The notes under the pieces were generated by a model. The model made no database searches. It had not been told where the DNA came from and worked only from the letters and a program-made list of their open reading frames with translations. A program made the position numbers and the translations under genes. A DNA stretch of 63,983 bases, the filler included, from Pelomyxa schiedti (Eukaryota; Protista; Evosea), in the NCBI GenBank assembly GCA_020536535.1. It is 7 parts of 7 records of this genome, joined end to end, with 100 filler letters (N's around TTAATTAATTAA, not from the genome) between each part and the next. Parts side by side here need not be neighbours in the genome. Positions count along the whole stretch, not along the records: positions 33,968 to 50,685 come from JAHLWZ010000556.1; 6 more parts are not named here. One strand, 5' to 3'. Below, one piece after another: positions 33,868-50,685 of the stretch; positions within the stretch are counted from its first letter, which is position 1, and the number at the start of each line of letters is the position of its first letter.

Positions 33868-34280
33868 NNNNNNNNNNNNNNNNNNNNNNNNNNNNNNNNN
33901 NNNNNNNNNNNTTAATTAATTAANNNNNNNNNNNNNNNNNNNNNNNNNNNNNNNNNNNNNNNNNNNNTCATAAATCACCTGCACCCGATGAGACCGGCAC
34001 ATTCTCACCAAACACAACAACGGCGGAGACTCCAGTTAGGAAGTGTGCCTCAATGAAAAAAAATAATTCCACAAAAAGGAAAAAAAAAATGACACCAGAT
34101 TGGCGTACTGTCAATTTCCCCCCCGTTGGAACCAGAAAATTGAATTATTTACTCATACACTGTATAATATGCACCCACCCCTAAGAAACCTCTGCCATGG
34201 GGATTAGGTAGTGACTCTGGTTGTATCCACAAGTCTCGGTACAAATCATGAAGCTGTTGGGATAGAAGGGTAAGAGGTAC

Positions 34281-37200
34281 ATACAAGAACGCCATAATAA
34301 AATAATGTGGTTTGGGGTTTTATTATGCCTTAGAAGGGAAAAATCGGCATAACAGAGTGTCACAGAGAACAACAGCTTGTTGTAGTGCATGTACAGATGC
34401 AATGTAGTGCAGACAGAGTCGTTGCCAAAACGCTTGAGCATCTCCCGTTGGAGTGACCGACCAATGAACAGAATGAGCAAGAAAACAGTCTGTTCGCAGA
34501 ATCACACATGGTGTTTGCTGTTTGCATTTTGGCTTCAACCACATTGTGTAGGTTTTTCCATCTTTGTCGCTTATAGTCAATGGGTGCCCAGTAACACTTG
34601 CAACAGCAACAGACCCCACTTTGTGGAACTGTAGGTGGTTTTGGAGGTATCCTGGCGAAAGGAGAGTGTATATGGCAAGGTGGCATAGTCGCAAGGAGAG
34701 TTCCAGCATGGTGGAATCGCGATTATGATGTTGTGGAATGGCACATCAGCCTGCACTGAAGCGGATATTTCCGATATGGAAGCGGACATTTCCGGCACTG
34801 AAGCGATCATTTTCGGCACTACCAGCATGCACTCTGCAATGAGATTNNNNNNNNNNNNNNNNNNNNNNNNNNNNNNNNNNNNNNNNNNNNNNNNNNNNNN
34901 NNNNNNNNNNNNNNNNNNNNNNNNNNNNNNNNNNNNNNNNNNNNNNGCATTCTGTTGCTTCGTTGCGTTACTCTGTTGCTCTTTTCATTCGCATCGTTTT
35001 GCAAGCATTTTCGCATTGCACCTTCGTCATGCTTCATCGTCGTCATTATCTGTTCTATCTACTGTGGCGCTACTCTTGCACTGCACACTCGTGCACATCT
35101 ACTTCGACGTTCTTATTGTTGTACACTCGCGTTACTACCGCTCTTTCAGCAACATCGTTTTCCTGTTGTTTTCTTGCTCATTCTGTTCATTGGTCGTTCG
35201 CACCAACGGGAGATGCTCAAGCGTTTTGGCAACGACTCTGTCTGCACTACATTGCATCTGTACATGCACTACAACAAGCTGTTGTTCTCTGTGACACTCT
35301 GTTATGCCGATTTTTCCCTTTAAGGCATAATAAAACCCCAAACCACATTATTTTATTATGGCGTTCTTGTATGGTGGTTTTGGAGGTATCCTGGCGAAAG
35401 GAGAGTGTATCTGGCAAGGTGGCATAGTCGCAAGGAGAGTTCCAGCATGGTGGAATCGCGATTATGATGTTGTGGAATGGCGCATCAGCCTGCACTGAAG
35501 CGGATATTTCCGACATGGAAGCGGACATTTCCGGCACTGAAGCGATCATTTTCGGCACTACCAGCATGCACTCTGCAATGAGATTAGCGCGGAAATCATG
35601 AGGATCATACCTACAATACCCGGCAAGCGTTCTATTCAGCGCGGGAATGCTAGAAACTCATATTTGAAGTCACTGGATCAATTCCAAAGCTATGTAACAT
35701 GAGACTCTCATTTTCACTTCAATTTACAATTAGTTTATTCATTCCGTTTACATTTATTGATTTATTGGCTTTCAATTGCGTTTTAAAAGCTATTTAGCAC
35801 TATTTTGTTCATGGAATTTCACTCTACGAAATAGATATTTTGGATTGAGTGAGGAACACTCACCTGGAATTCTATTTGCGCTCTGTGCCTACCCATGACT
35901 TGGGAATTTTCGTTTTAATTATGGGTGGATCATGGGAACACAGAAGCGATGGTGTATCCCTGTGACGGACCTCAGCATTGCATATTGCTGTCCCATCACA
36001 CCTGGAAAATCGTTTTTGACCTCCTGGATGTTATTTTGCCCTGCAAGACGTTATTTTGGGAATAAAAGAAGTGGCCACACAGTTATCCTTGCAGCGGACT
36101 GCAGTAGCTCCCAAGGGCACTTGATTGTTATCTGCATTTTTTCCCTGGAGTGGCAAACAAATTTCGAAATTTGTGCTGCCATTGGCATGTTAGTCTGCAG
36201 ATTGGAAATTGTTATTTGGATTTGGGAGTATAGAGTGTACTGCACATACAGAGACAATTTCGAGGTCATCCTGTCATCTTCTGGGGATACAGTAGGCAGG
36301 AAGTGAGACAAAGTCACCCATACAACATTCTGCAAATGAGCAATTTGCCCAAGCTCATTGTATTCAAGTTCTACATTGTGCTGCAGCTTCAAGGCAATCT
36401 TATTTTTTCGTTAGTCAGCTGCACAAGCAAATGGGAATGCATACCATTCTGGCCGCCATTGCAATGCTGCAAAACTGGCACTGGCATGACAATATGACAA
36501 TTCTGTTGAGAGATTCACGCCATTAGAAGACATCCAATCATTTCAGCACTCAGGCATTCTCTCTTTGGCGAATTTCTGGTCATTTATTAGGTGGAGATCA
36601 AGGAATTGTTCTTACCTGACACTGGAGGAATCAGCACTGTTTCCAAAGGCGTTTTCACACCATTTCGAAGCTCCTGCAATGGAATAAGCTATTCTGGCAA
36701 TAGTAACCAGGAAAGGAATACCTGGAATCGCGCAGGAACTCTGGAAAGCAAATCTGAAGCACAGCAAACTCTGTTGCAATTCGAGGACTGATTTCCAATG
36801 CTGCATATTGGCCCTGCATGACAGCAATACATTCTTTATCTATGGCAACAATGTTAGGCAATTCAGGCAATGTCAAGCTACACACACTTCAAGGACCGAT
36901 TGCACTGAAGTCCCAAAGAAGCCCACAAACAAAGTCATCCATTCTGGACAAACAGTTAGCACTGAGAGATCTGTGACTGGAACACACACCAAATCGAAGC
37001 AAGAGTACTTCTCTACATCCTACAGTTCATTCCTTAGCCTGCAAGCATCATCTAGCACATGCATCAAAGCAAAAATCCTCATCATGGCGCAGCCATCAAA
37101 CCCAAGCATGAATTCTAACACCTACATTCAATTAATTCACACACCAACAATCCTACATACCTGCAAGTCACATCAATTCACTGCAAATTCGGCCCTCATG

Positions 37201-37746
37201 CAAATTCCAACCAATTACTGCACAAGTCAACCATAACATGCATCTGGCATCAGAACTATCATTGGCACACTGATAGCACATACCCCAATATTCATGCACT
37301 TATCCTGGACCGATTTTCATCAATTCTGCACTGTTCTGATTGACCCAAAGTGATTGCACTGTAATGGCATCAGCATTCACAATCGAAAGTACATAATTAC
37401 CTGGCAACTGGCAGAAGGCTTGTCCAACTTTCTGAGCACTCTTGCATCATCCTGTTCCAAGGAATCAAGCAGTCACACAAACTGGAGAGACATCAGTACG
37501 AATTTACCTCTGCTCACTGGAAGGCATACCAGCCTAGTTCAAGTACGAATCAGCATTCAGCATTCAATTTGGCTCAAGGCAATACCTATGACATTTTAGT
37601 TAGACCTTACTAGTAGTATGTAATAGTATGTATATTCGTTTTTATTACTTGAATGGTGTTATGGAACTGGTAAACGGCTGAAAACCCCATCTAGGCAGCC
37701 TGTGATGCTCATAAGCCAGTACTGTACATCATTAAGGTAAATAACG

Positions 37747-37805
<59 letters not shown>

Positions 37806-39837
37806 GTACCTGCGTTGAGGCACATTAGCACACATGAAGAAAACACTTGGAACTCACACACACAACACCGGCAAAGCTCCAACTCGTCGCCGAACTGACA
37901 AACACCACAACAATGCTCCATTCATCATCCCAAACATCATCTCCAACAACCGGACCATAATCATTCACTACCGACAACTTCCCGTTTCAAAAACGAACCG
38001 CTACTACACCAGCACCATCATTTCATTTTCGAAATTCTGCTGAAAGAACAACGATCACCAGCTTCAGAGGAAGGGGGAGCATGTGTGATTCTGCGAACAC
38101 ACAGGCAAACTGTGCGCAAGGCACACTCGCAAGACTTGAGACTGGAGACTCAGAGGCTGAGTCATCACTTACCAAGTTCGGAAATCAAGTTCACAGAAAG
38201 ATCATCGAGATACCCAAGACCTTTCCCTTGACTTTGGAATCCTTTATAAACGCACACCAAGTCACCCCATTTCTATACAAAAAAATACCAAGAATCCCAA
38301 TACAAATATACAAAAACACAAATACAAAATCCCAACACAAATACCTACACCCAAATGTACCCATCCATTCCAAGATGAATAAAATACTTTGTGCCTCTTT
38401 GTTCTCCTTTGGTGCAGTTTCCTTCCCACCCACTGAAGGAAACATATGGTGGAGGATGCGTGTTTTGACCCTCACAAGCACTTCAACATCTTGGAATCTG
38501 AATCATCAAGATCGACATCAATCACAGTGACACGGCACATGGCTCGCTGTTGACAGTCATCTGACTCACGCTGTTGACATGTTCTACATCATCTTGACAC
38601 TGTTTCTCTTCATTCATCGACGAATCGACATCATCGGCGATTACCTTCGCATCGGCACATTGCTATCGCACAACGTTGCTTCTATTGGCATGCTACGTTC
38701 GAGTACTTCAACATCCATGTGGTGACATCGCATTCTGTTGCTTCGTTGCGTTACTCTGTTGCTCTTTTCATTCGCATCGTTTTGCAAGCATTTTCGCATT
38801 GCACCTTCGTCATGCTTCATCGTCGTCATTATCTGTTCTATCTACTGTGGTGCTACTCTTGCACTGCACACTCGTGCACATCTACTTCGACGTTCTCATG
38901 GTTGTACACTCGCGTTATTACTGCTCTTTCAGCAACATCGTTTTCCTGTTGTTTTCTTGCTCATTCTGTTCATCGGTCGCTCGCGCCAACGGGAGATGCT
39001 CAAGCGTTTTGGCAACGACTCTGTCTTCACAACACTGCTTCTGTACATGCACTACAACAAGCTGTTGTTCTCTGTGACACTCCGTTATGCCGATTTTCCC
39101 TTTAAGGCATAATAAAACCCCAAACCACATTATTTTATTACGGCGTTCTTGCATAGTGGTTTTGGAGGTATCCTGGTGAAAGGAGAGTGTATCTGGCAAG
39201 GTGGCATAGTCGCAAGGAGAGTTCCAGCATGGTGGAATCGCGATTGTGATGTTGTGGAATGGTGCATCAGCCTGCACTGAAGCGGATATTTCCGACATGG
39301 AAGCGGATATTTCCGACATGGAAGCGGACATTTCCGGCACTGAAGCGATCATTTTCGGCACTACCAGCATGCACTCTGCAGTGACATTAGCGCGGAAATC
39401 ATGAGGATCATACCTACTATACCTGGCAAGCATTCTATTCAGCGCGGGAATGCTAGAAACTCATATTTGAAGTCACTGGATCAATTCCAAAGCTATGTAA
39501 CATGAGACTCTCATTTTCACTTCAATTTACAATTAGTTTATTCATTTCGTTTACATTTATCATTTTATTGGCTTTCAATTGCGTTGTAAAAGCTATTTAG
39601 TGCTATTTTGTTCATGGAATTTCACTCTACGAAATAGATATTTTGGATTGAGTGAGGAACACTCACCTGGAATTCTATTTGCGCTCTGTGCATACCCATG
39701 ACTTGGGAATTTTCGTTTTAATTATGGGTGGATCATGGGAACACAGAAGCGATGGTGTATCCCTGTGACGGACCTCAGCATTGCATATTGCTGTCCCATC
39801 ACACCTGGAAAATCGTTTTTGACCTCCTGGATGTTAT
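34281..39837 (+). mobile_element. Tandem copies of a LARD-like LTR element sharing one LTR (38082-38444)
   Basis: Order is internal region, poly(A) 37747-37801, PPT 38066-38079, LTR, TA+PBS 38447-38455, then internal region again. Interrupted by N gaps, with an inverted/deleted fragment at 34281-34630. Confidence 0.85.
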
Positions 39838-41775
39838 NNNNNNNNNNNNNNNNNNNNNNNNNNNNNNNNNNNNNNNNNNNNNNNNNNNNNNNNNNNNNNN
39901 NNNNNNNNNNNNNNNNNNNNNNNNNNNNNNNNNNNNNGGTACTGCTGCATCAGTGTTCTACCATTAACTTTTCTCTAGAAAAGATTTGTTGAAGTTTCTC
40001 TCTCTAGCCCCTGTCACACTGGATGGTTTACCAGGTTTTCCTATTTCATTCAAAACTTATAACACTTGTTTGTTTTAGATTTGCCTGAAGAACCTGTTCT
40101 TTGTGTTGAGAGTTTGGCGAAACTGGTTTGTATTGTGAAGAGCCCTTACTGGTGCACAGCATTTAATGCCATATTTCTTAAGGAGTATGAAAAATTTAAG
40201 TTGTAACCACTTTTGGTTTTCTTAGTGCTTACTGTTGCAGAAAGCACTGTTTCCAGTCCTTTGACTCGATTTTTGACAATAGTATTAACATTCATCTGCC
40301 GTATCATATGTGTCAAACTGGGGAGCGACTACAGCACACTATTGGTCTTCTTGGTAAACACTTCATTGGAAAAGACACCAACTTCATTCTCCAGGAAAGT
40401 GCTGCTCACACTTGTGTACCTTTTTTCCATTCTGTGTTCATTTATTGACCACCAAAGGGAGTTGAACAAAGATTCTGAGCTTCTACAAAGTGCGTCGCAG
40501 AATGTTTGGTATCTTCAAAAAAAACAGGCAATGGTAGTGTGGGGTCTTACTCTGAGAGTTGGCTCAGTCTATTTATGCTTTTTGAGGACCCAAAAAAGCT
40601 TTGCCTTTGGTCGCATCTGTGCTATACAGTGGCACCGGGAGTTAGTTGATGTAGAGTGGCTAACTTCACCCAAATGTAAGAGAGAAGCTTCAATACTTTG
40701 GCTCACAATTACAGGCAATTTTAAAACAAAGTCCCCTGTTCTGCCACAATTGGCAATGACAGGCACTGTCTCTGTCTTTGATGTTCTCCGCCAAGTGGTG
40801 GTTATGCCTGGGTTCCGCTGTGGTTTGACAACACAGACTAAGAACACATTTGTTTGGCTGTCAGCAGCACTTGGTGTATGAATTCACCTCCGCACCCACC
40901 TTCCCACCACATCCCCCCTCAAACAGACAAAAGACAAAAGACACTTCTGTTTCTTTTTTTTTTTTGCCTTTGGTTCTGTGCAGAAGAAAAACCCACTGTG
41001 GGTACCTTTGTCTGTGGACTTCCAAAATGGATTGCATGGGGCCATTTGGAAGTGGTACACACTGACCCCGCTTTGGTGGATTTAAGCCAAAGAGGGTCCT
41101 TCTGGGAAAAATGGTACCCACCTTGGATTCAGGGTGCAAGTCAGATCGTGTTGCTGCAGTCTGCACCAACTGAGAGGAGACAAGTGTATAAACAATCAAC
41201 TCAGTTAATTAATCCTGGGCGTGTTGGTCCCTTCCCGGTTGGAGCTAACCGACTTCTGCGTCTGACTGAGGAGATCCCCCACTTTGGGTTTAACGTACCA
41301 ATTTGGGTACAAGTTCAGCTCTCCAATGTACAGACAAATTGTGTTAAATCTCCCCAATTCCATCCAAATTGGGGAACTTGCACACACTTTGGAATCAGGG
41401 TGCAGCGGCGGGACCCGATTCAATGAACCCACACGCGCCAACCGCCCCGCGGCACAAAACATCAACAAATCCCGGCAAAATCGGGCCACTTCACCCTGCC
41501 TTGCTCACTAAAAAATTCTGTTTTTCTCATTTGACTTGCCCCCCGTAGAAAGGGAAAATTCAGTGTGATGAAGAAGAAAGGTGAATGGCAGGTACGAGAG
41601 CATTGAGCCACTGTGTGATGCACTCGTTCACTTGGTCGTCTGTCACAGTGCCCCCTGCTGTTGTTGCTTCTGCTTGTGACACAATGGCGGTGCAGCAACA
41701 CAACATCAGTTTCACGATCACTGTGAATGGAAACCTGTTCCTCTCTGTGGTTTGGGAGCCAGTGAGCAAACACAG

Positions 41776-43097
41776 TCAGGTGAAGGAAGTGCACTCACCA
41801 AGGATTGAGAGGCACGACTGAACGACGAGCACAACGAGGTCTGCAGCCGCTGTAGACCATCCATCTGTCAAATGCAGAAGTGCGGAATCAGGGGAGTGCG
41901 TGAGGTGGTTAACAGCCTCAACGGAAGCATTCCTCCTGCTCAAGCAGCTTGCAATGAATGACTCCCTTGACTCCCGGCAAAGTTTTTTCACCTCTGTTTC
42001 CAGTGAGTGAGAGTTCCACAAAAAGAAGAACAAACCTTCAACTTCCTGGGGTGCAAGTAATCTCCTCTGTTCGTTCATGAAGTTTGCCTGTGAGATGAGG
42101 GGGAGACTGTCAAAGGGCGCATCAACAATGTCGCCATTGAGCATCTCAGTCATCAGTATTCCAAACCCCCACATGTCCCCTGTGGTTTTTTTTTTTTTGG
42201 CAGTGATCCAAGGACAATTCCTCAACCTTTGACTGAGTAATGTGCAGTTGCCATTTTGGGAGCCATGTAAACAGGTGTTCCAGGCCCAATGGTTCTGTTT
42301 GTCCCTTGGCTGATCAGTCTTGTTGTTGTCCCTTGTGGGTCCATTGCTCGTGACACACCTTGGGTGTGTTGAAGAAGAATTTTTCACAATACTCATCATA
42401 CCAAAGTCGCAAATCTTTGGAACACCATTTGCGTCAAAGAGTACATTGTTGCTGCTCAGATCCCTGTGCATGAAGTTTTGCCTGGTGTAGTTTGGATTTT
42501 AATGGATGTTAATTTGAGTGGTTATTTGGTAAAAATAGATGGACCTGTGGAGGCTGGGTGGGTGTGCGTGTAAATATGTTGGATGGTCAAAACTGGTGCC
42601 ATCCTCACCTTCATTGCTGTTTTGTTGTCATGTATTGTTGTTTTGTGCATCAAGAGGAGGGTCAACCTGGGATTTGGCGTTTTGGGGAAACCAGTTGGGA
42701 AAGTGACAGTGATGGAGAAGCAGAGAGTGTTGTCTCAGAATGACTTCGGGAAGATAAAGAGATGACCTGCTGGTTTTCATCCAGACCAAACTGTTTCTCA
42801 ACTGCCATCTTCACAACCTGTGTTCGTTGTTGGTTTTCTCATGGTTGTCAACTTGTTCTGAGGTGTTAGCCTAACACCATCATACCTTGTCCAATGGGCA
42901 CAATGAGCAAACTGACTCCTCAAATTCGATGTTGTGCCTTTCCAGTGTGACTGTAACTTTCTTCATCACACACGATCTGCTCTTCACCTCTTCTTCTTCT
43001 GGTGTGCTTTGGGAGTGTATTCTGAGTGGTTGTGATGGTGCACTTACAGATTTCACCCAAACACCCTGTTGGATATGCTTCAGAACGTGTTCAAAGC
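41776..43097 (-). pseudogene. TKL-like kinase fragment lacking a visible N-lobe
   Basis: HRDLSSNNVL, KICDFGM, GTPVYMAP, GDMWGFG are present. No GxGxxG or VAIK found in the upstream exons, and the 5' part is cut off by the LTR at 43138. Confidence 0.65.
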
Positions 43098-43137
43098 CTG
43101 CATTTGAGAATGTGGGTGAAAAATAAAAGAGTGCAAC

Positions 43138-46100
43138 TGTGTGATTCTGCGAACACACAGGCAAACTGTGTGCAAGGCACACTCGCAAGACTTGAGACTG
43201 GAGACTCAGAGGCTGAGTCATCACTTACCAAGTTCGGAAATCAAGTTCACAGAAAGATCATCGAGATACCCAAGACCTTTCCCTTGACTTTGGAATCCTT
43301 TATAAACGCACACCAAGTCACCCCATTTCTATACAAAAAAATACCAAGAATCCCAATACAAATATACAAAAACACAAATACAAAATCCCAACACAAATAC
43401 CTACACCCAAATGTACCCATCCATTCCAAGATGAATAAAATACTTTGTGCCTCTTTGTTCTCCTTTGGTGCAGTTTCCTTCCCACCCACTGAAGGAAACA
43501 TATGGTGGAGGATGCGTGTTTTGACCCTCACAAGCACTTCAACATCTTGGAATCTGAATCATCAAGATCGACATCAATCACAGTGACACGGCACATGGCT
43601 CGCTGTTGACAGTCATCTGACTCACGCTGTTGACATGTTCTACATCATCTTGACACTGTTTCTCTTCATTCATCGACGAATCGACATCATCGGCGATTAC
43701 CTTCGCATCGGCACATTGCTATCGCACAACGTTGCTTCTATTGGCATGCTACGTTCGAGTACTTCAACATCCATGTGGTGACATCGCATTCTGTTGCTTC
43801 GTTGCGTTACTCTGTTGCTCTTTTCATTCGCATCGTTTTGCAAGCATTTTCGCATTGCACCTTCGTCATGCTTCATCGTCGTCATTATCTGTTCTATCTA
43901 CTGTGGTGCTACTCTTGCACTGCACACTCGTGCACATCTACTTCGACGTTCTCATGGTTGTACACTCGCGTTATTACTGCTCTTTCAGCAACATCGTTTT
44001 CCTGTTGTTTTCTTGCTCATTCTGTTCATCGGTCGCTCGCGCCAACGGGAGATGCTCAAGCGTTTTGGCAACGACTCTGTCTTCACAACACTGCTTCTGT
44101 ACATGCACTACAACAAGCTGTTGTTCTCTGTGACACTCCGTTATGCCGATTTTCCCTTTAAGGCATAATAAAACCCCAAACCACATTATTTTATTACGGC
44201 GTTCTTGCATAGTGGTTTTGGAGGTATCCTGGTGAAAGGAGAGTGTATCTGGCAAGGTGCCATAGTAGCAAGGAGAGTTCCAGCATGGTAGAATCGTGAT
44301 TGTGATGTTGTGGAATGGCACATCAGCCTGCACTGAAGCGGATATTTCCGATATGGAAGCGGACATTTCCAGCACTGAAGCGATCATTTTCAGCACTACC
44401 AGCATGCACTCTGCAATGAGATTAGCGCGGAAATCATGAGGATCATACCTACAATACCCGGCAAGCGTTCTATTCAGCGCGGGAATGCTAGAAACTCATA
44501 TTTGAAGTCGCTGGATCAATTCCAAAGCTATGTAGCATGAGACTCTCATTTTCACTTCAATTTACAATTAGTTTATTCATTTCGTTTACATTTATTGATT
44601 TATTGGCTTTCAATTGCGTTTTAAATGCTATTTAGTGCAATTTTGTTCATGAAATTTCACTCTACGAAATAGATATTTTGGATTGAGTGAGGAACACTCA
44701 CCTGGGAATTATATTTGCGCTCTGTGCATACCCATGACTTGGGAATTTTCGTTTAACTATGGGTGGATCATGGGAACACAGAAGCGATGGTGTATCCCTG
44801 TGATGGACCTCCGCATTGCATATTGCTGTCCCATCACACCTGGAAAATCGTTTTTGACCTCCTGGACGTTATTTTGCCCTGCAAGACGTTACTTTGGGAA
44901 TAAAAGAAGTGGCCACACAGTTATCCTTGCAGCGGACTGCAGTAGCTCCCAAGGGCACTTGATTGTTATCTGCATTTTTTCCCTGGAGTGGCAAACAAAT
45001 TTCGAAATTGTGCTGCCATTGGCATGTTAGTCTGCAGATTGGAAATTGTTATTTGGATTTGGGAGTATAGAGCGTACTGCACATACAGAGACAATTTCGA
45101 GGTCATCCTGTCATCTTCTGGGGATACAGTAGGCAGGAAGTGAGACAAAGTCACCCATACAACATTCTGCAAATGAGCAATTTGCCCAAGCTCATTGTAT
45201 TCAAGTCCTACATCATGCTGCAGCTTCAAGGCAATCTTATTTTTCGTTAGTCAGCTGCACAAGCAAATGGGAATGCATACCTATTTGATAGCTGTGATCT
45301 CCAAGCATCTCTATTCTGGCCGCCATTGCAATTTGCTGCAAAACTGGCACTGGCATGACAATATGACAATTCTGTGGAGAGATTCACGCCATTGGAAGAC
45401 ATCCAATCATTTCAGCACTCAGGCATTCTCTCTTTGGCGAATTTCTGGTCATTTATTAGGCGGAGATCAAGGAATTATTCTTACCTGACACTGGAGGAAT
45501 CAGCACCGTTTTCAAAGGCGTTTTCACATCGTTTCGAAGCTCCTGCAATGGAATAAGCTATTCTGGCAATAGTAACCAGGAAAGGAATACCTGGAATTGC
45601 GCAGGAACTCTGGAAAGCAAATCTGAAGCACAGCAAACTCTGTTGCAATTTGAGGACTGATTTCCAATGTTGCATTTCGGCCCTGCATTACAGCAATGCA
45701 TTCTTCATCTATGGCAACAATGTTAGGCAATTCAGGCAACGCCAAGCTACACAGACTTCAAGGACCAATTGCACTGAAGTCCCAAAGAAGCCCACAAGCT
45801 CACAAAGTCATCCATTCTGGACAAACAGTTAGACACTGAGATATCTGTGACTGGAACACACAAAAATCGAGGCAAGAGTACTTCTCTACATCCCACAGTT
45901 CATTGCTTAGCCTGCAAGCATCATCTAGTGCATTTGCCAAAGAAAAATCCTCATCATGGCGCAGCCATCAAACTCAAGCATGAATTCTAACACCTACATT
46001 CAATTAGTTTACACACCAACATTCCCACATACCTGCAAGTCACACCAATTCACTGCAAATTCGGCCCTCATGCAAATTCCAACCAATTACTGCACAAGTC

Positions 46101-46618
46101 AACCATAACCTGCATCTGGCATCAGAACTATCATTGGTACACTGATAGCACATACCCCAATAATCATACACTCATCCTGGACCGATTTTCATCAATTCTG
46201 CACTGTTCTGATTGACCCAAAGTGATTGCACTGTAATGGCATCAGCATTCACAATCGAAAGTACATAATTACCTGGCAACTGGCAGAAGGCTTGTCCAAC
46301 TTTCTGAGCACTCTTGCATCATTCTGTTCCAAGGAATCAAGCAGTCACACAAACTGGAGAGACATCAGTATGAATTTACCTTTACTCACTGGAAGGCATA
46401 CCAGCCTAGTTCAAGTACGAATCAGCATTCAGCATTCAATTTGGCTCAAGGCAATACCTATGACATTTCAGTTAGACCTTACTAGTAGTATGTAATAGTA
46501 TGTATATTCGTTTTTATTTACTTGAATGGTGTTATGGACTGGTAAACGGCTGAAAACCCCATCTAGGCAGCCTGTGATGCTCATAAGCCAGTACTGTACA
46601 TCATTAAGGTAAATAACG

Positions 46619-46654
<36 letters not shown>

Positions 46655-47276
46655 TACCTGCGTTGAGGCACATTAGCAACACATGAAGAAAACACTTGGA
46701 ACTCACACGCACAACACCGGCAAAGCTCCAACTCGTCGCCGAACTGACATACACCACAACAATGCTCCATTCATCATCCCAAACATCATCTCCAACAACC
46801 GGACCATAACCATTCACTACCGACAACTTCGCATTCCAAAAACGAACCGCTACTACACCAGCACCATCATTTCATTTTCGAAATTCTGCTGAAAGAACAA
46901 CGATCACCAGCTTCAGAGGAAGGGGGAGCATGTGTGATTCTGCGAACACACAGGCAAACTGTGCACAAGGCACACTCGCAAGACTCGAGACTGGACACTC
47001 AGAGGCTGAGTCATCACTTACCAAGTTCGGAAATCAAGTTCACAGAAAGATCATCGAGATACCCAAGACCTTTCCTTTGACTTTGGAATCCTTTATAAAC
47101 ACACACCAAGTCACCTCATTTCTATACAAAAAATACCAAGAATCCCAATACAAATATACAAAAAACCTCAACACAAACACACCCAAATGTATCCATCCAT
47201 TCCAAGATGAATAAAATACTTTGTGCCTCTTTGTTCTCCTTTGGTGCAGTTTCCTTCCCTCCCACTGAAGGAAACA
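43138..47276 (+). mobile_element. Full-length-looking LARD-like LTR element (4139 bp)
   Basis: 5' LTR 43138-43500 and 3' LTR 46931-47276, both TGT..ACA. PBS TGGTGGAGGATGCG at 43503. PPT AGAGGAAGGGGGAG before 46931. Internal A34 at 46619-46652. No gag/pol motifs. Confidence 0.88.
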
Positions 47277-48249
47277 TGAGAAATATTTGATAACCCGTTT
47301 TTTTTCTCGTGTAGCTGCGGAAACAATGAGGTTTGGTAACCATTTTAACATCTTTCTGTTAATAAGCTGCATGAAGGTTACACACATCTGCATCAGAAAT
47401 TGAACTTTTTTGTTTTTTTTTTCACAGGTATGGTGCACAACAATTCGACACCTTATGTAACTCACTTTTGACAAACTAGTGGGTTTGAACAATCAAAGTG
47501 CCTGGAGTGAGATCTGGAGTCCTGTCGGAGCGTCTACTTTCTTCAGGCCATTCTATTTACCCATGTATGTTAAACCGGTTCAACTATCGCAATGTGAAAC
47601 AGTTGCGTAACTTCCTTCTTTTCTGTTTTTCTAACATTTTTCCTTTTTAAAACCCAGCTTGTTATGCTGTTAAGGTAAAGAGCGAACTTTAACCCAACCA
47701 TCGCCACCACAAGTGGACAATTAAGTGTTCCTGGGCTTTTTTGGTTTGGGGAACAAATCAAGCCCGACTGTTGTACAATTCACTGTGAAATTGGAATGAA
47801 GAAGGACTGTGTGAGGACTGTATGTACTCGTGGATTCAAATATTCTTTCTAACTTTGTCCCAGTCTTGAACACTGTCTAGGAGACACCCCACGACAACGA
47901 CTAGAGAGATGGCCATGTCGCGCGCTGTGGCGGTCTCGGGCGTGGTGTGGGACTCGGTGGTGCCCAAGGCGGCATCAGCGTGGTGACAGTTATTACTTCA
48001 AAAGATGGCATGACAGAACTCATTGGCTATTCTACCAATCACCAGGTGCTGCAGAGGAATAACCACCAAGAAACCCACAAGTACAAAACCAAACAAAAAA
48101 AAAGAGTTAAAAAAGAAACAGGCCAGTATTATCTCGGTGGCTGGGGTAACTTGGGGTGAGCTGATAGGGGTAACGGCAACAAAAATCATCCCCGGTAGCC
48201 AAAAAACGTCCACTTTTCGTTGCCGTTAGGGGCAACGGCAACGAGAGGA

Positions 48250-48550
48250 TTATGCATGGGGACGCAAAGAGATATTACTGTGCATCGGCTCATTCTCGAT
48301 TAGCAGGCAAGTCGATGTTGGATAATGAGACAGTGTGTGTGGCACCACCATAAGCTTCCCAGGTTTGTGTTGGATAAGTGGATTGTACTGTAATAGTGTC
48401 AGACTCCATCGAGCCAACCTTCCAGATAGGTTTTTTGCCTCCAGAAGGTACTTAAGTGCAATGTGATCTGTGTATAACGTGATGCCTACAGCTCCTTGGA
48501 TATAGCTCCGCCAGTGCTTCAAGGCTTCCACTGCTGCAAGACACTCCCGC
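48250..48550 (-). mobile_element. Ty3/gypsy pol RNase H, C-terminal half
   Basis: ERECLAAVEALKHWRSYIQG..LYTDHIALKYL..SGRLARWSLTLLQY..IQHKPGK. Confidence 0.9.
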
Positions 48551-49744
48551 TCTTTGGTGAATTTCTGGTCATTTATTAGGCAGAGATCAAGGAATTGTTC
48601 TTACCTGACACTGGAGGAATCAGCACTGTTTTCAAAGGCGTTTTCACATTGTTTAGAAGCTCCTGCAATGGAATAAGTTATTCTGGCAATAGTAACCAGG
48701 AAAGGAATACCTGGAACTGTGCAGGAACTCTGGAAAGCAAATCTGAAGCACAGCAAACTCTGTTGCAATTTGAGGACTGATTTCCAATGCTACATATCGG
48801 CCCTGCATTACAGCAATGCATTCTTCATCTATGGCAACAATGTTAGGCAATTCAGGCAATGCCAAGCTACACACACTTCAAGGACCGATTGCACTGGAGT
48901 CCCAAGGAAGCTCATAAGCCCACAAACAAAGTCATCCATTCTGGACAAACAGTTAGACACTGAGATATCTGTGACTGGAACACACACCAAAATCGAGGCA
49001 AGAGTACTTCTCTACATCCCACAGTTCATTCCTTAGCCTGCAAGCATCATCTAGCACATGCATCAAAGAAAAATCCTCATCATGGCGCAGCCATCAAACC
49101 CAAGCATGAATTCTAACACCTACATTCAATTAATTCACACACCAACAATCCTACATACCTGCAAGTCACATCAATTCACTGCAAATTCGGCCCTCATGCA
49201 AATTCCAACCAATTACTGCACAAGTCAACCATAACATGCATCTGGCATCAGAATTATCATTGGTGCATTGATAGCACTTACCCCAATGCTCATACACTCA
49301 TCCTGGACCGATTTTCATCAATTCTGCACTGTTCTGATTGACCCAAAGTGATTGCACTGTAATGGCATCAGCAGTCACAATCGAAAGTACATAATTACCT
49401 GGCAACTGGCAGAAGGCTTGTCCAACTTTCTGAGCACTCTTGCATCATTCTGTTCCAAAGAATCAAGCAGTCACACAAACTGGAGAGACATCAGTACGAA
49501 TTTACTTTTACTCACTGGAAGGCATACCAGCCTAGTTCAAGTACGAATCAGCATTCAGCATTCAATTTGGCTCAAGGCAATACCTATGACATTTCAGTTA
49601 GACCTTACTAGTAGTATGTAATAGTATGTATATTCGTTTTTATTTACTTGAATGGTGTTATGGACTGGTAAACGGCTGAAAACCCCATCTAGGCAGCCTG
49701 TGATGCTCATAAGCCAGCACTGTACATCATTAAGGTAAATAACG

Positions 49745-49798
<54 letters not shown>

Positions 49799-50497
49799 TA
49801 CCTGCGTTGAGGCACATTAGCACACATGAAGAAAACACTTGGAACACACACACACAACACCGGCAAAGCTCCAACTCGTCGCCGAACTGACATCCACCAC
49901 AACAATGCTCCATTCATCATCCCAAACATCATCCCCAACAACCGGACCATAACCATTCACTACCAACAACTTCCCGTTTCAAAAACGAACCACTACTACA
50001 CCAGCACCATCATTACATTTTCGAAATTCTGCAGAAAGAGCAACTGGCTGAATAAAATAATCAACAGACCGGAACGCTGTACTTTTCGTTATCGTCGCTC
50101 AGTATCGGCGGTCTGGTGTTTTTTTTATTCAGCCAACTATCACCAGCTTCAGAGGAAGGGGGAGCATGTGTGATTCTGCGAACACACAGGCAAACTGTGC
50201 GCAAGGCACACTCGCAAGACTCGAGACTGGGGACTCAGAGGCTGAGTCATCACTTACCAAGTTCGGAAATCAAGTTCACAGAAAGATCATCGAGATACCC
50301 AAGACCTTTCCTTTGACTTTGGAATCCTTTATAAACGCACACCGAGTCACCTCATTTCTATACAAATATACAAATATACAAAAACACCTCAACACAAACA
50401 CACCCAAATGTATCCATCCATTCCAAGATGAATAAAATACTTTGTGCCTCTTTGTTCTCCTTTGGTGCAGTTTCCTTCCCACCCACTGAAGGAAACA
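48551..50497 (+). mobile_element. 5'-truncated LARD copy inserted in gypsy RNase H
   Basis: Matches the internal region from ~36556 onward. A52 at 49745-49796, PPT, and 3' LTR 50167-50497. Confidence 0.88.
50046..50134. mobile_element. MITE copy 2 (89 bp)
   Basis: Perfect 12-bp TIR GGCTGAATAAAA with 4-bp direct repeats AACT. Absent from the matching sites in the other LARD copies (~38050, ~46899). Confidence 0.9.
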
Positions 50498-50685
50498 TAT
50501 ATCATAGTTCCTCTCTGCCTTTGTTAGTGCCCGGCTCCAGTAGGCTATAGTAACCCTCCTTTTCCCTATTAGCTGGAATAACACTGCACCCAGACCAATG
50601 CCCGATGCATCTGATTCAATGCAGAAAGGTAAACTCCTGTCTGGGTACCCCAATATTGGTGCCTCCATGAGTGCGTGCTTCAGAG
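50498..50685 (-). mobile_element. Ty3/gypsy pol RT-RNase H linker / N-terminal RNase H
   Basis: EAPILGYPDRSLPFCIESDASGIGLGAVLFQ..IAYWSRALTKAERNYD. Confidence 0.92.

Follow-up and report, generated by a model that had tools for sequence, protein, structure and literature searches.

The window analysed here is a stretch of 63,983 nucleotides (nt) from the draft genome of Pelomyxa schiedti, an anaerobic amoeba, and at 43138–47276 it carries a complete unit of 4,139 bp bounded by two long terminal repeats (LTRs) in direct orientation. The 5′ LTR (43138–43500, plus strand, 363 bp) starts with TG, ends with CA and contains TATAAA at 43301 and AATAAA at 43434. It is followed by a TA linker and a 14-nt primer-binding site (PBS) that begins with TGG at 43503 (together 43501–43516, plus strand), and then by a non-coding interior of about 3.43 kb (43517–46914, plus strand), which includes a 21-bp tandem repeat (44330–44397) and an A tract (46619–46652; length given as 34–55 nt). 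A 14-nt polypurine tract (PPT) and a CA linker (46915–46930, plus strand) lie directly 5′ of the 3′ LTR (46931–47276, plus strand, 346 bp). The minus strand was considered as the true sense and rejected, as the LTR-adjoining sequence there has no TGG start and the opposite end lacks a purine-rich stretch. Compared with each other, the LTRs of the unit are 97.1% identical over aligned columns, with a further 17 nt of indels, whereas the 5′ LTR is 99.7% identical to another LTR at 38082 and is thus closer to it than to its own partner. Because of this greater divergence within the pair, what reads as a complete copy could have arisen by recombination, or the assembly could have passed from one copy to another within it.

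The first-pass annotation had placed LTR segments at 38082, 43138, 46931 and 50167, with a PBS after or a PPT before each according to the side on which the interior lies, and both observations were borne out. The four direct-repeat LTRs span 38082–38444 (363 bp), 43138–43500 (363 bp), 46931–47276 (346 bp) and 50167–50497 (331 bp), a range of 331–363 bp; all start with TGTGTGATT (first letters TGTG), end with GGAAACA and contain both TATAAA and AATAAA. TA plus the 14-nt PBS is found 3′ of both LTRs with interior downstream (PBS at 38447 and 43503), and an all-purine 14-nt PPT plus CA is found 5′ of all three LTRs with interior upstream (PPT at 38066, 46915 and 50151). This tracking of PBS and PPT with the LTRs is not independent evidence within this piece of sequence, because the copies are all homologous by descent. 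The complement of the PBS ends in CCA and has the A73 and U70 positions, in which it presumably resembles tRNA-Ala, a candidate isotype. No tRNA genes were detected in the piece with ARAGORN and no match was returned by Rfam. When prokaryotic genomes were scanned for the 14-mer as a tRNA 3′ end, 120 loci came up, none of them a tRNA end and all of them chance matches, and a literature search for the PBS string turned up unrelated primer lists only.

None of the tests applied to the interior detected any coding capacity, in agreement with the earlier description of a roughly 3.4-kb interior that shows no gag/pol motif. None of its 27 open frames of at least 59 amino acids (aa) matched a Pfam family, and a motif search found no gag or pol motifs. 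Searching with 150 Ty3/gypsy Pol proteins by tblastn gave no match between the LTRs (43501–46930), even at E=1, so the reverse transcriptase (RT), RNase H and integrase of an autonomous Ty3/gypsy element are not recognizable there; matches came only from two halves of an RNase H domain beyond the element and from LTR-derived parts of a P. schiedti gypsy protein (P0004; KAH3742726.1). One open frame reaches 175 aa, compared with a mean of 109 ± 21 in shuffled sequence, and no homologue was found for the longest frame in the interior. All three forward frames are open across one T/C-rich stretch, however, a pattern that speaks for base composition and not for coding. Pfam likewise gave no match for ten open frames taken from the flanks (40207–43137 and 47277–48225), and an exact look-up of ten open reading frames (ORFs) of the window in a protein collection found none. 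Two other origins for parts of the interior were considered and dropped. An antisense RNase H remnant had been suggested by a match of 8 nt at 45430 together with slight similarity around 45540–45600, but the 150 Pol proteins gave no tblastn match there; a captured poly(A) transcript had been suggested by the A tract, and was rejected as the interior offers no ORF and no homologue.

Further interior copies are present at 34947–38065, 38461–39837 and 48559–50150, and together with 43517–46914 they are 94–97% identical by self-BLAST, with at least two in different flanks. The scaffold thus holds three to four diverged copies, which differ by 3–6%. One contig (34947–39837, plus strand) consists of element sequence only: the 3′ 3.1 kb of the interior, a PPT (38066), an LTR (38082–38444), a PBS (38447) and the 5′ 1.4 kb of the interior. 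Its overlapping ends are 95% identical to each other. Either elements stand in tandem around one shared LTR here, or the contig is an assembly chimera. Three rearranged element fragments lie at the close of the first contig (34280–34846): an inverted interior piece (34280–34487), the first 18–20 nt of the LTR, also inverted (34491–34510), and a direct interior piece (34630–34846). What appears as a 16-kb array is in fact three contigs joined by 100-N gaps (34847–34946 and 39838–39937), and these scaffold joins, with which the element coincides, are probably unreliable. Given the joins and an assembly built from single cells amplified by multiple displacement amplification (MDA) and scaffolded with RNA-seq pairs (PMC8887013), the adjacency of copies and any dating by LTR divergence are unreliable. 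Of the proposal that at least four copies lie within 16 kb, the similar copies therefore stand, while the physical map is not reliable; a recent amplification, which had also been proposed, does not follow from copies that differ by 3–6% and whose adjacency depends on scaffolding.

The family extends beyond this scaffold at the level of the LTR. Four P. schiedti gene models, each on a different contig elsewhere in the assembly, contain LTR-derived peptides, and one of these models is labelled Ty3 Gag-Pol. In three of these four, homology starts at the same LTR TG with a different sequence to its left, and the LTR-derived peptide is preceded by L or V, which fits an NTG codon. An LTR segment lies inside the RT domain of P0004, so that, with the insertion described below, the family is nested in gypsy elements twice. 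Interior copies were seen on this scaffold only, and the segments on other contigs are LTR-derived; by its LTR the family is dispersed and multi-copy. Exact-pattern scans of JGI metagenome contigs, one with the LTR end plus PBS and one with a conserved LTR 34-mer, gave no match.

A 5′-truncated copy of 1,942 bp occupies 48559–50500 (plus strand). It runs from the equivalent of interior position 45439 through a PPT (50151) and an LTR (50167–50497) to a terminal TAT, and it lies antisense to a Ty3/gypsy RT-RNase H domain. To its left, on the minus strand, is the C-terminal half of that domain (48217–48558; positions 50–105 of Pfam RT_RNaseH; P0004 residues 186–298), and to its right, also on the minus strand, is the N-terminal half (50501–50683; RT_RNaseH 1–48; P0004 residues 125–185), which is cut short by the edge of the piece. 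The insertion point falls precisely on the boundary of two neighbouring codons: in the intact paralogue P0004, which is uninterrupted here, residue 185 corresponds to 50501 and the next one, residue 186, to 48558. As the copy splits the RNase H domain, the family has moved. At the left junction, an 8-nt microhomology (CTCTTTGG; 48550–48557, plus strand) is common to the target and to the element interior (45430–45437). A target-site duplication (TSD) of 4–6 bp, which the first-pass annotation had suggested looking for, was absent at both of the insertions examined in this chimera-prone draft assembly: the complete copy is flanked by GCAAC on the left and TGAGA on the right, and the truncated copy shows neither duplication nor loss of target sequence. 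A TSD is the hallmark of integrase-mediated insertion rather than a component of the element, and canonical integration is accordingly not demonstrated at either site.

The junctions of the truncated copy tentatively suggest that an incomplete reverse transcript was captured at a chromosome break independently of integrase, a reading we regard as possible rather than probable. Its right end still carries TAT, the three nucleotides with which the sequence continues from the LTR into the PBS, as would an unprocessed U5 terminus (CA+TAT), and its left end is a microhomology join in a target with neither duplication nor loss. A full-length, integrase-mediated insertion with a subsequent deletion between short repeats, or a patch made in break repair on the template of a chromosomal tandem copy instead of free cDNA, would account for the occurrence of CTCTTTGG in target and interior alike, and tandem interior–LTR–interior arrangements do exist (34947–39837). 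A deletion should nevertheless have left the right-hand copy of a TSD, where instead the LTR is followed by a TAT foreign to the target, from which not one codon is missing; for a patch, a stop no more than 3 nt from where the LTR ends would have to be a coincidence. We consider an origin by deletion or patching rather unlikely. Capture of retrotransposon cDNA at chromosome breaks is known for Ty1 in yeast, and the likeness lies in the partial cDNA, the missing TSD, the microhomology join and the retained unprocessed LTR terminus; the difference is that capture is proposed here from the sequence of one junction pair in a draft assembly. If this is correct, breaks in the DNA of an archamoeba are patched with cDNA of retroelements. 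This junction pair is the sole unusual point of an otherwise ordinary parasite.

For the element as a whole, we conclude that 43138–47276 is very probably a copy of a 4.1-kb, non-coding family of non-autonomous LTR retrotransposons of the large retrotransposon derivative (LARD) kind in P. schiedti. The first-pass annotation had read it in this way, and the reading is supported by an anatomy that proved real, a non-coding interior, dispersal of the family and insertion in another transposon. Points against it are the missing TSDs, the divergence between the two LTRs of the unit and the fact that interior copies were seen on this scaffold only. The copies might instead be decayed or internally deleted remnants of an autonomous LTR retrotransposon, dead and never amplified in a non-coding form. 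The 175-aa frame exceeds the shuffled expectation and a very divergent gag would escape Pfam, but the openness of three frames over a single T/C-rich stretch suggests composition, and no remnant of pol was detected even at E=1. Moreover, at least three copies, 3–6% apart and two of them in different insertion contexts, have the same non-coding interior, from which it follows that coding capacity was lost before the family spread. An origin as such remnants is improbable. Still less credible, to the point of being very improbable, is a segmental duplication, or an assembly or MDA artefact, of a unique region that carries LTR-like signals by coincidence. MDA-amplified single cells and RNA-based scaffolding (PMC8887013), 100-N gaps, the inverted chimeric fragments at 34280–34510 and the lack of a TSD all lend it some weight. 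Against it, the TG and CA termini, PPT-NN-LTR, LTR-NN-TGG PBS, TATA and AATAAA all co-occur, and four other contigs carry the LTR, whose first TG follows a different base in three of them. The RNase H domain is also split exactly between adjacent codons, as two independent chimeric joins would not do.

Having end signals and no genes of its own, the LARD-like element probably relies on the enzymes of another element. Transcription would start downstream of TATAAA in the 5′ LTR and end after AATAAA in the 3′ LTR, and the RNA would be packaged and reverse-transcribed by proteins that a coding LTR element supplies. These probably come from a Ty3/gypsy family, since this genome contains one. Minus-strand synthesis would start from a host tRNA annealed to the PBS, at a distance of 2 nt from the 5′ LTR, and plus-strand synthesis from the polypurine tract, separated by 2 nt from the 3′ LTR; the cDNA would then be inserted in the genome.

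In the paper describing the P. schiedti genome, ‘transpos’, ‘retro’ and ‘repeat’ each occur zero times (PMC8887013), and our literature search on retrotransposons in Archamoebae found nothing. The element is a familiar kind of genomic parasite in a group without an earlier description of one, and, if our reading is right, Archamoebae would have in this family their first described non-autonomous LTR retrotransposon. There is also a practical side: the LTR is built into at least four annotated P. schiedti ‘proteins’, and a curated consensus would improve both repeat masking and gene models of this genome.

Classical LARDs have LTRs on the kilobase scale. They were first described in Triticeae as non-coding LTR retrotransposons of more than 4 kb, and a size of more than 4 kb separates them from classical TRIMs (terminal-repeat retrotransposons in miniature), which are under 1–1.5 kb (PMC13570524). 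The P. schiedti element resembles LARDs in that its LTRs flank a conserved non-coding interior, a PBS and PPT are kept, its length exceeds 4 kb and mobilization in trans is presumed, although at 4,139 bp it stands at the size boundary. It differs in its much shorter LTRs (0.33–0.36 kb), in the absence of a TSD at two insertions, in a partner that is putative and in its host, an archamoeba rather than a plant. TRIMs and long-TRIMs often occur as tandem copies with a shared LTR and contain satellite-like internal repeats (PMC13570524), and the element is like them in being non-coding, in having LTRs of a few hundred base pairs with a PBS and PPT, and in its interior–LTR–interior contig and 21-bp internal tandem repeat; unlike TRIMs, it measures 4.1 kb with an interior of 3.4 kb. 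The Ty3/gypsy elements of P. schiedti (for example KAH3742726.1, KAH3765130.1 and KAH3764399.1) encode RT/RNase H, whereas the non-coding element encodes nothing recognizable, but they belong to the same element class in the same genome and are candidate suppliers of Gag and Pol.

Self-comparison of 33968–50685, the sequence used for the element analysis, revealed a single repeated unit. Two runs of exactly 100 N (34847–34946 and 39838–39937) interrupt this sequence, which therefore represents three contigs. The unit is present on the + strand as a complete copy (43138–47276), as an element-only contig (34947–39837) comprising the last 3.1 kb of the interior, an LTR and then the first 1.4 kb of the interior, and as a 5′-truncated copy (about 48550–50500). 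Rearranged element fragments occupy 34280–34846. The copies are pairwise identical at 94–97%. All interior copies seen sit on this one scaffold, and exact-pattern scans of metagenome contigs returned no match to the element.

The four LTRs, all on the + strand, have the ends and positions that the first-pass annotation had given them: 38082–38444 (363 bp), 43138–43500 (5′ LTR of the complete copy; 363 bp), 46931–47276 (its 3′ LTR; 346 bp) and 50167–50497 (truncated copy; 331 bp). Each starts with TGTGTGATT, ends with GGAAACA and carries TATAAA (for example, at 43301) with AATAAA about 130 nt downstream (43434), an order that matches expectation for U3, R and U5. Retroviruses and LTR retrotransposons share the layout PPT-NN-TG...CA-NN-PBS, in which a polypurine tract (PPT) precedes one LTR and a primer-binding site (PBS) follows the other. 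Here, a 14-nt all-purine tract plus CA precedes every LTR with interior upstream (38066, 46915 and 50151), and TA plus a 14-mer beginning TGG follows every LTR with interior downstream (38447 and 43503). Because these signals would be senseless on the opposite strand, the element lies on the + strand. The earlier argument, that the PBS and PPT accompany the LTR ends, is borne out at these positions but carries little weight by itself, since every copy here is homologous to the others. In complement, the PBS has a CCA end, A73 ahead of the CCA and U at position 70. The identity elements of tRNA-Ala are G3:U70 and A73, which makes tRNA-Ala a candidate primer. No tRNA genes were found within the analysed piece, and a scan of prokaryotic genomes with the 14-mer, as a tRNA 3′ end, gave chance matches alone.

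The interior of the complete copy (43501–46930, + strand; 3,430 bp) had been described as free of gag/pol motifs, and Pfam, tblastn and motif checks all bear this out. None of its 27 open frames (59–175 aa, both strands) belongs to a Pfam family, the best E-values (0.03–0.08) being at chance level and far below gathering scores. A tblastn search of the piece with 150 RT/RNase H-bearing proteins, gathered using the flanking RNase H fragment, gave significant matches only at the two RNase H halves, which lie outside the element, and through the LTR-derived parts of one gene model; in the interior, no match was better than E = 0.03. Regular expressions found no credible zinc knuckle, protease, YxDD or integrase motif there. 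The longest open frame (175 aa), for which no homologue was found, lies in a T/C-rich, stop-poor stretch where all three forward frames are open together. The interior also contains a 21-bp tandem repeat of 3.2–4.2 units, depending on the copy (44330–44397, 39274–39362, 34753–34820 and 35492–35559), and pure A tracts (46619–46652, 34 nt; 37747–37801, 55 nt; 49745–49796, 52 nt) about 280–370 nt upstream of the 3′ LTR, one in each of three copies, which may be captured poly(A) tails or microsatellites. An insertion of about 93 bp (50045–50137), unique to the truncated copy, where it lies 14 nt ahead of the PPT, has inverted-repeat ends of about 13 nt (TGGCTGAATAAAA...) and a hairpin fold of −35.8 kcal/mol, and resembles a MITE or foldback element.

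The P. schiedti genome paper describes single-cell whole-genome-amplified DNA, assembly with SPAdes in single-cell mode and scaffolding with P_RNA_scaffolder, and makes no mention of transposons (PMC8887013). The 100-N joins were probably made from RNA-seq pairs, which hints that the element is transcribed. Of the four copies proposed within 16 kb, the four LTRs are indeed in place, but their order across these joins is unreliable for the same reason. At 34280–34510, an inverted interior fragment is fused to the inverted first 18–20 nt of the LTR, with a direct interior fragment following at 34630–34846. Such inverted chimeric fragments are a typical product of single-cell DNA amplification (MDA), and the join reflects either such a chimera or a genuine rearrangement at the contig end. 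The LTRs at 38082 and 43138 are 99.7% identical, in contrast to 97% for the interiors next to them and to 97.1%, plus indels, between the 5′ and 3′ LTRs of the nominally complete copy. Such a pattern points to a repeat that was collapsed, or an assembly path that switched between copies. LTR divergence is unfit for dating. The target-site duplication (TSD) sought at the complete copy is absent (GCAAC left, TGAGA right); this copy could have arisen by recombination between two elements, by a switch of path during assembly or by some other kind of non-canonical insertion. About 0.65 kb left of its 5′ LTR, antisense to the element, lies a protein-kinase catalytic core (41776–42498, − strand; HRDL...DFG; Pfam Pkinase, E = 1.4e-12), whose downstream motifs GTPVYMAP and DMWGFG fall in other reading frames, so that the locus either has short introns or is a frameshifted pseudogene.

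The truncated copy splits a Ty3/gypsy RT–RNase H domain (48217–48558 and 50501–50683, − strand; 84–95% identical to KAH3742726.1). The closest relatives of the RNase H fragment are the P. schiedti ‘Ty3 Gag-Pol’ entries KAH3742726.1 (95%), then KAH3765130.1 and KAH3764399.1. Pfam RT_RNaseH positions 1–48 fall at 50683–50501 and 50–105 at 48555–48250 (minus strand); residues 185 and 186 of the uninterrupted paralogue P0004 (KAH3742726.1) align to 50501 and 48558, respectively; and D-T spans the insertion point in all five P. schiedti-type relatives. Thus, 1,942 bp of element, consisting of the 3′ part of the interior, PPT and LTR in antisense to the gypsy gene, sits exactly between two adjacent codons. 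Pol similarity of the split gypsy copy ends near 48120–48217, with no integrase after it; since P0004 departs there too, the gypsy lineage could be a multi-copy derivative that is already truncated.

The target has neither lost nor duplicated any sequence at this insertion. At the right junction, the terminal CA of the LTR is followed by TAT and then target; the same TAT follows the 5′ LTR, where it comprises the TA linker and the initial T of the PBS (chance match 1 in 64). Linear cDNA that had escaped processing would be expected to have just this right end. At the left junction, CTCTTTGG is common to the target (48550–57) and the element interior (45430–37), with a probability of about 1.5e-5 of being shared at a fixed point by chance. 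Were the copy a full-length insertion later shortened by deletion, the right-hand TSD should persist, yet it is absent. A weaker alternative is that repair patched the site with sequence from a tandem copy in the chromosome. The most economical reading, which we advance tentatively and at less than even probability, is that an incomplete cDNA was captured at a break by non-homologous or microhomology-mediated joining, without integrase. Comparable cDNA capture events are known for yeast Ty1.

Pieces of the LTR also occur in other P. schiedti gene models. A 149-aa frame through the LTR matches three ‘hypothetical proteins’ of this species at 57–94% identity. Together with the relatives of the RNase H fragment, these matches assign the piece to P. 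schiedti, an anaerobic archamoeba, or to a very near relative, and not to human. On three other contigs, P0001 (Pelo_13797), P0002 (Pelo_8642) and P0004 contain the first 110–190 bp of the LTR in frame, with similarity beginning at an identical point. The residue ahead of the LTR-derived peptide is L in one and V in two of them, and its equivalents in the window are L (5′ LTR) and M (3′ LTR); as L, V and M all fit an NTG codon, a different base precedes the first TG of the LTR in each context. In P0004, the LTR segment breaks the RT domain immediately downstream of the conserved LVY in the YxDD region, by comparison with the protein P0005; in a fourth model, P0003 (Pelo_17540), the segment has a later start point. 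These different flanking contexts, together with the insertion into the RNase H domain, are evidence of the family’s mobility. The annotated proteins P0001–P0004 include exons translated from the U3 region, probably through errors of annotation or through chimeric transcripts driven by the LTR.

The family represented by 43138–47276 is probably a non-autonomous LTR retrotransposon, and the LARD-like reading of the first-pass annotation is supported in its core by the LTRs, PPT and non-coding interior. We found no literature report of retrotransposons in Archamoebae, which makes the element a new example in a poorly studied lineage. Non-coding LTR retrotransposons are divided into TRIMs (<1 kb) and LARDs (>4 kb), and tandem copies with shared LTRs are common among them (PMC13570524). 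The Pelomyxa element matches the LARD type in its LTRs, TG..CA ends and PPT, in its size, and in having a non-coding interior and having amplified in that non-coding form; the TSD of LTR retrotransposons was not found. It is thus akin to a LARD or ‘long-TRIM’, yet has short LTRs and a length at the size boundary, and its predicted mode of working is like that of LARDs.
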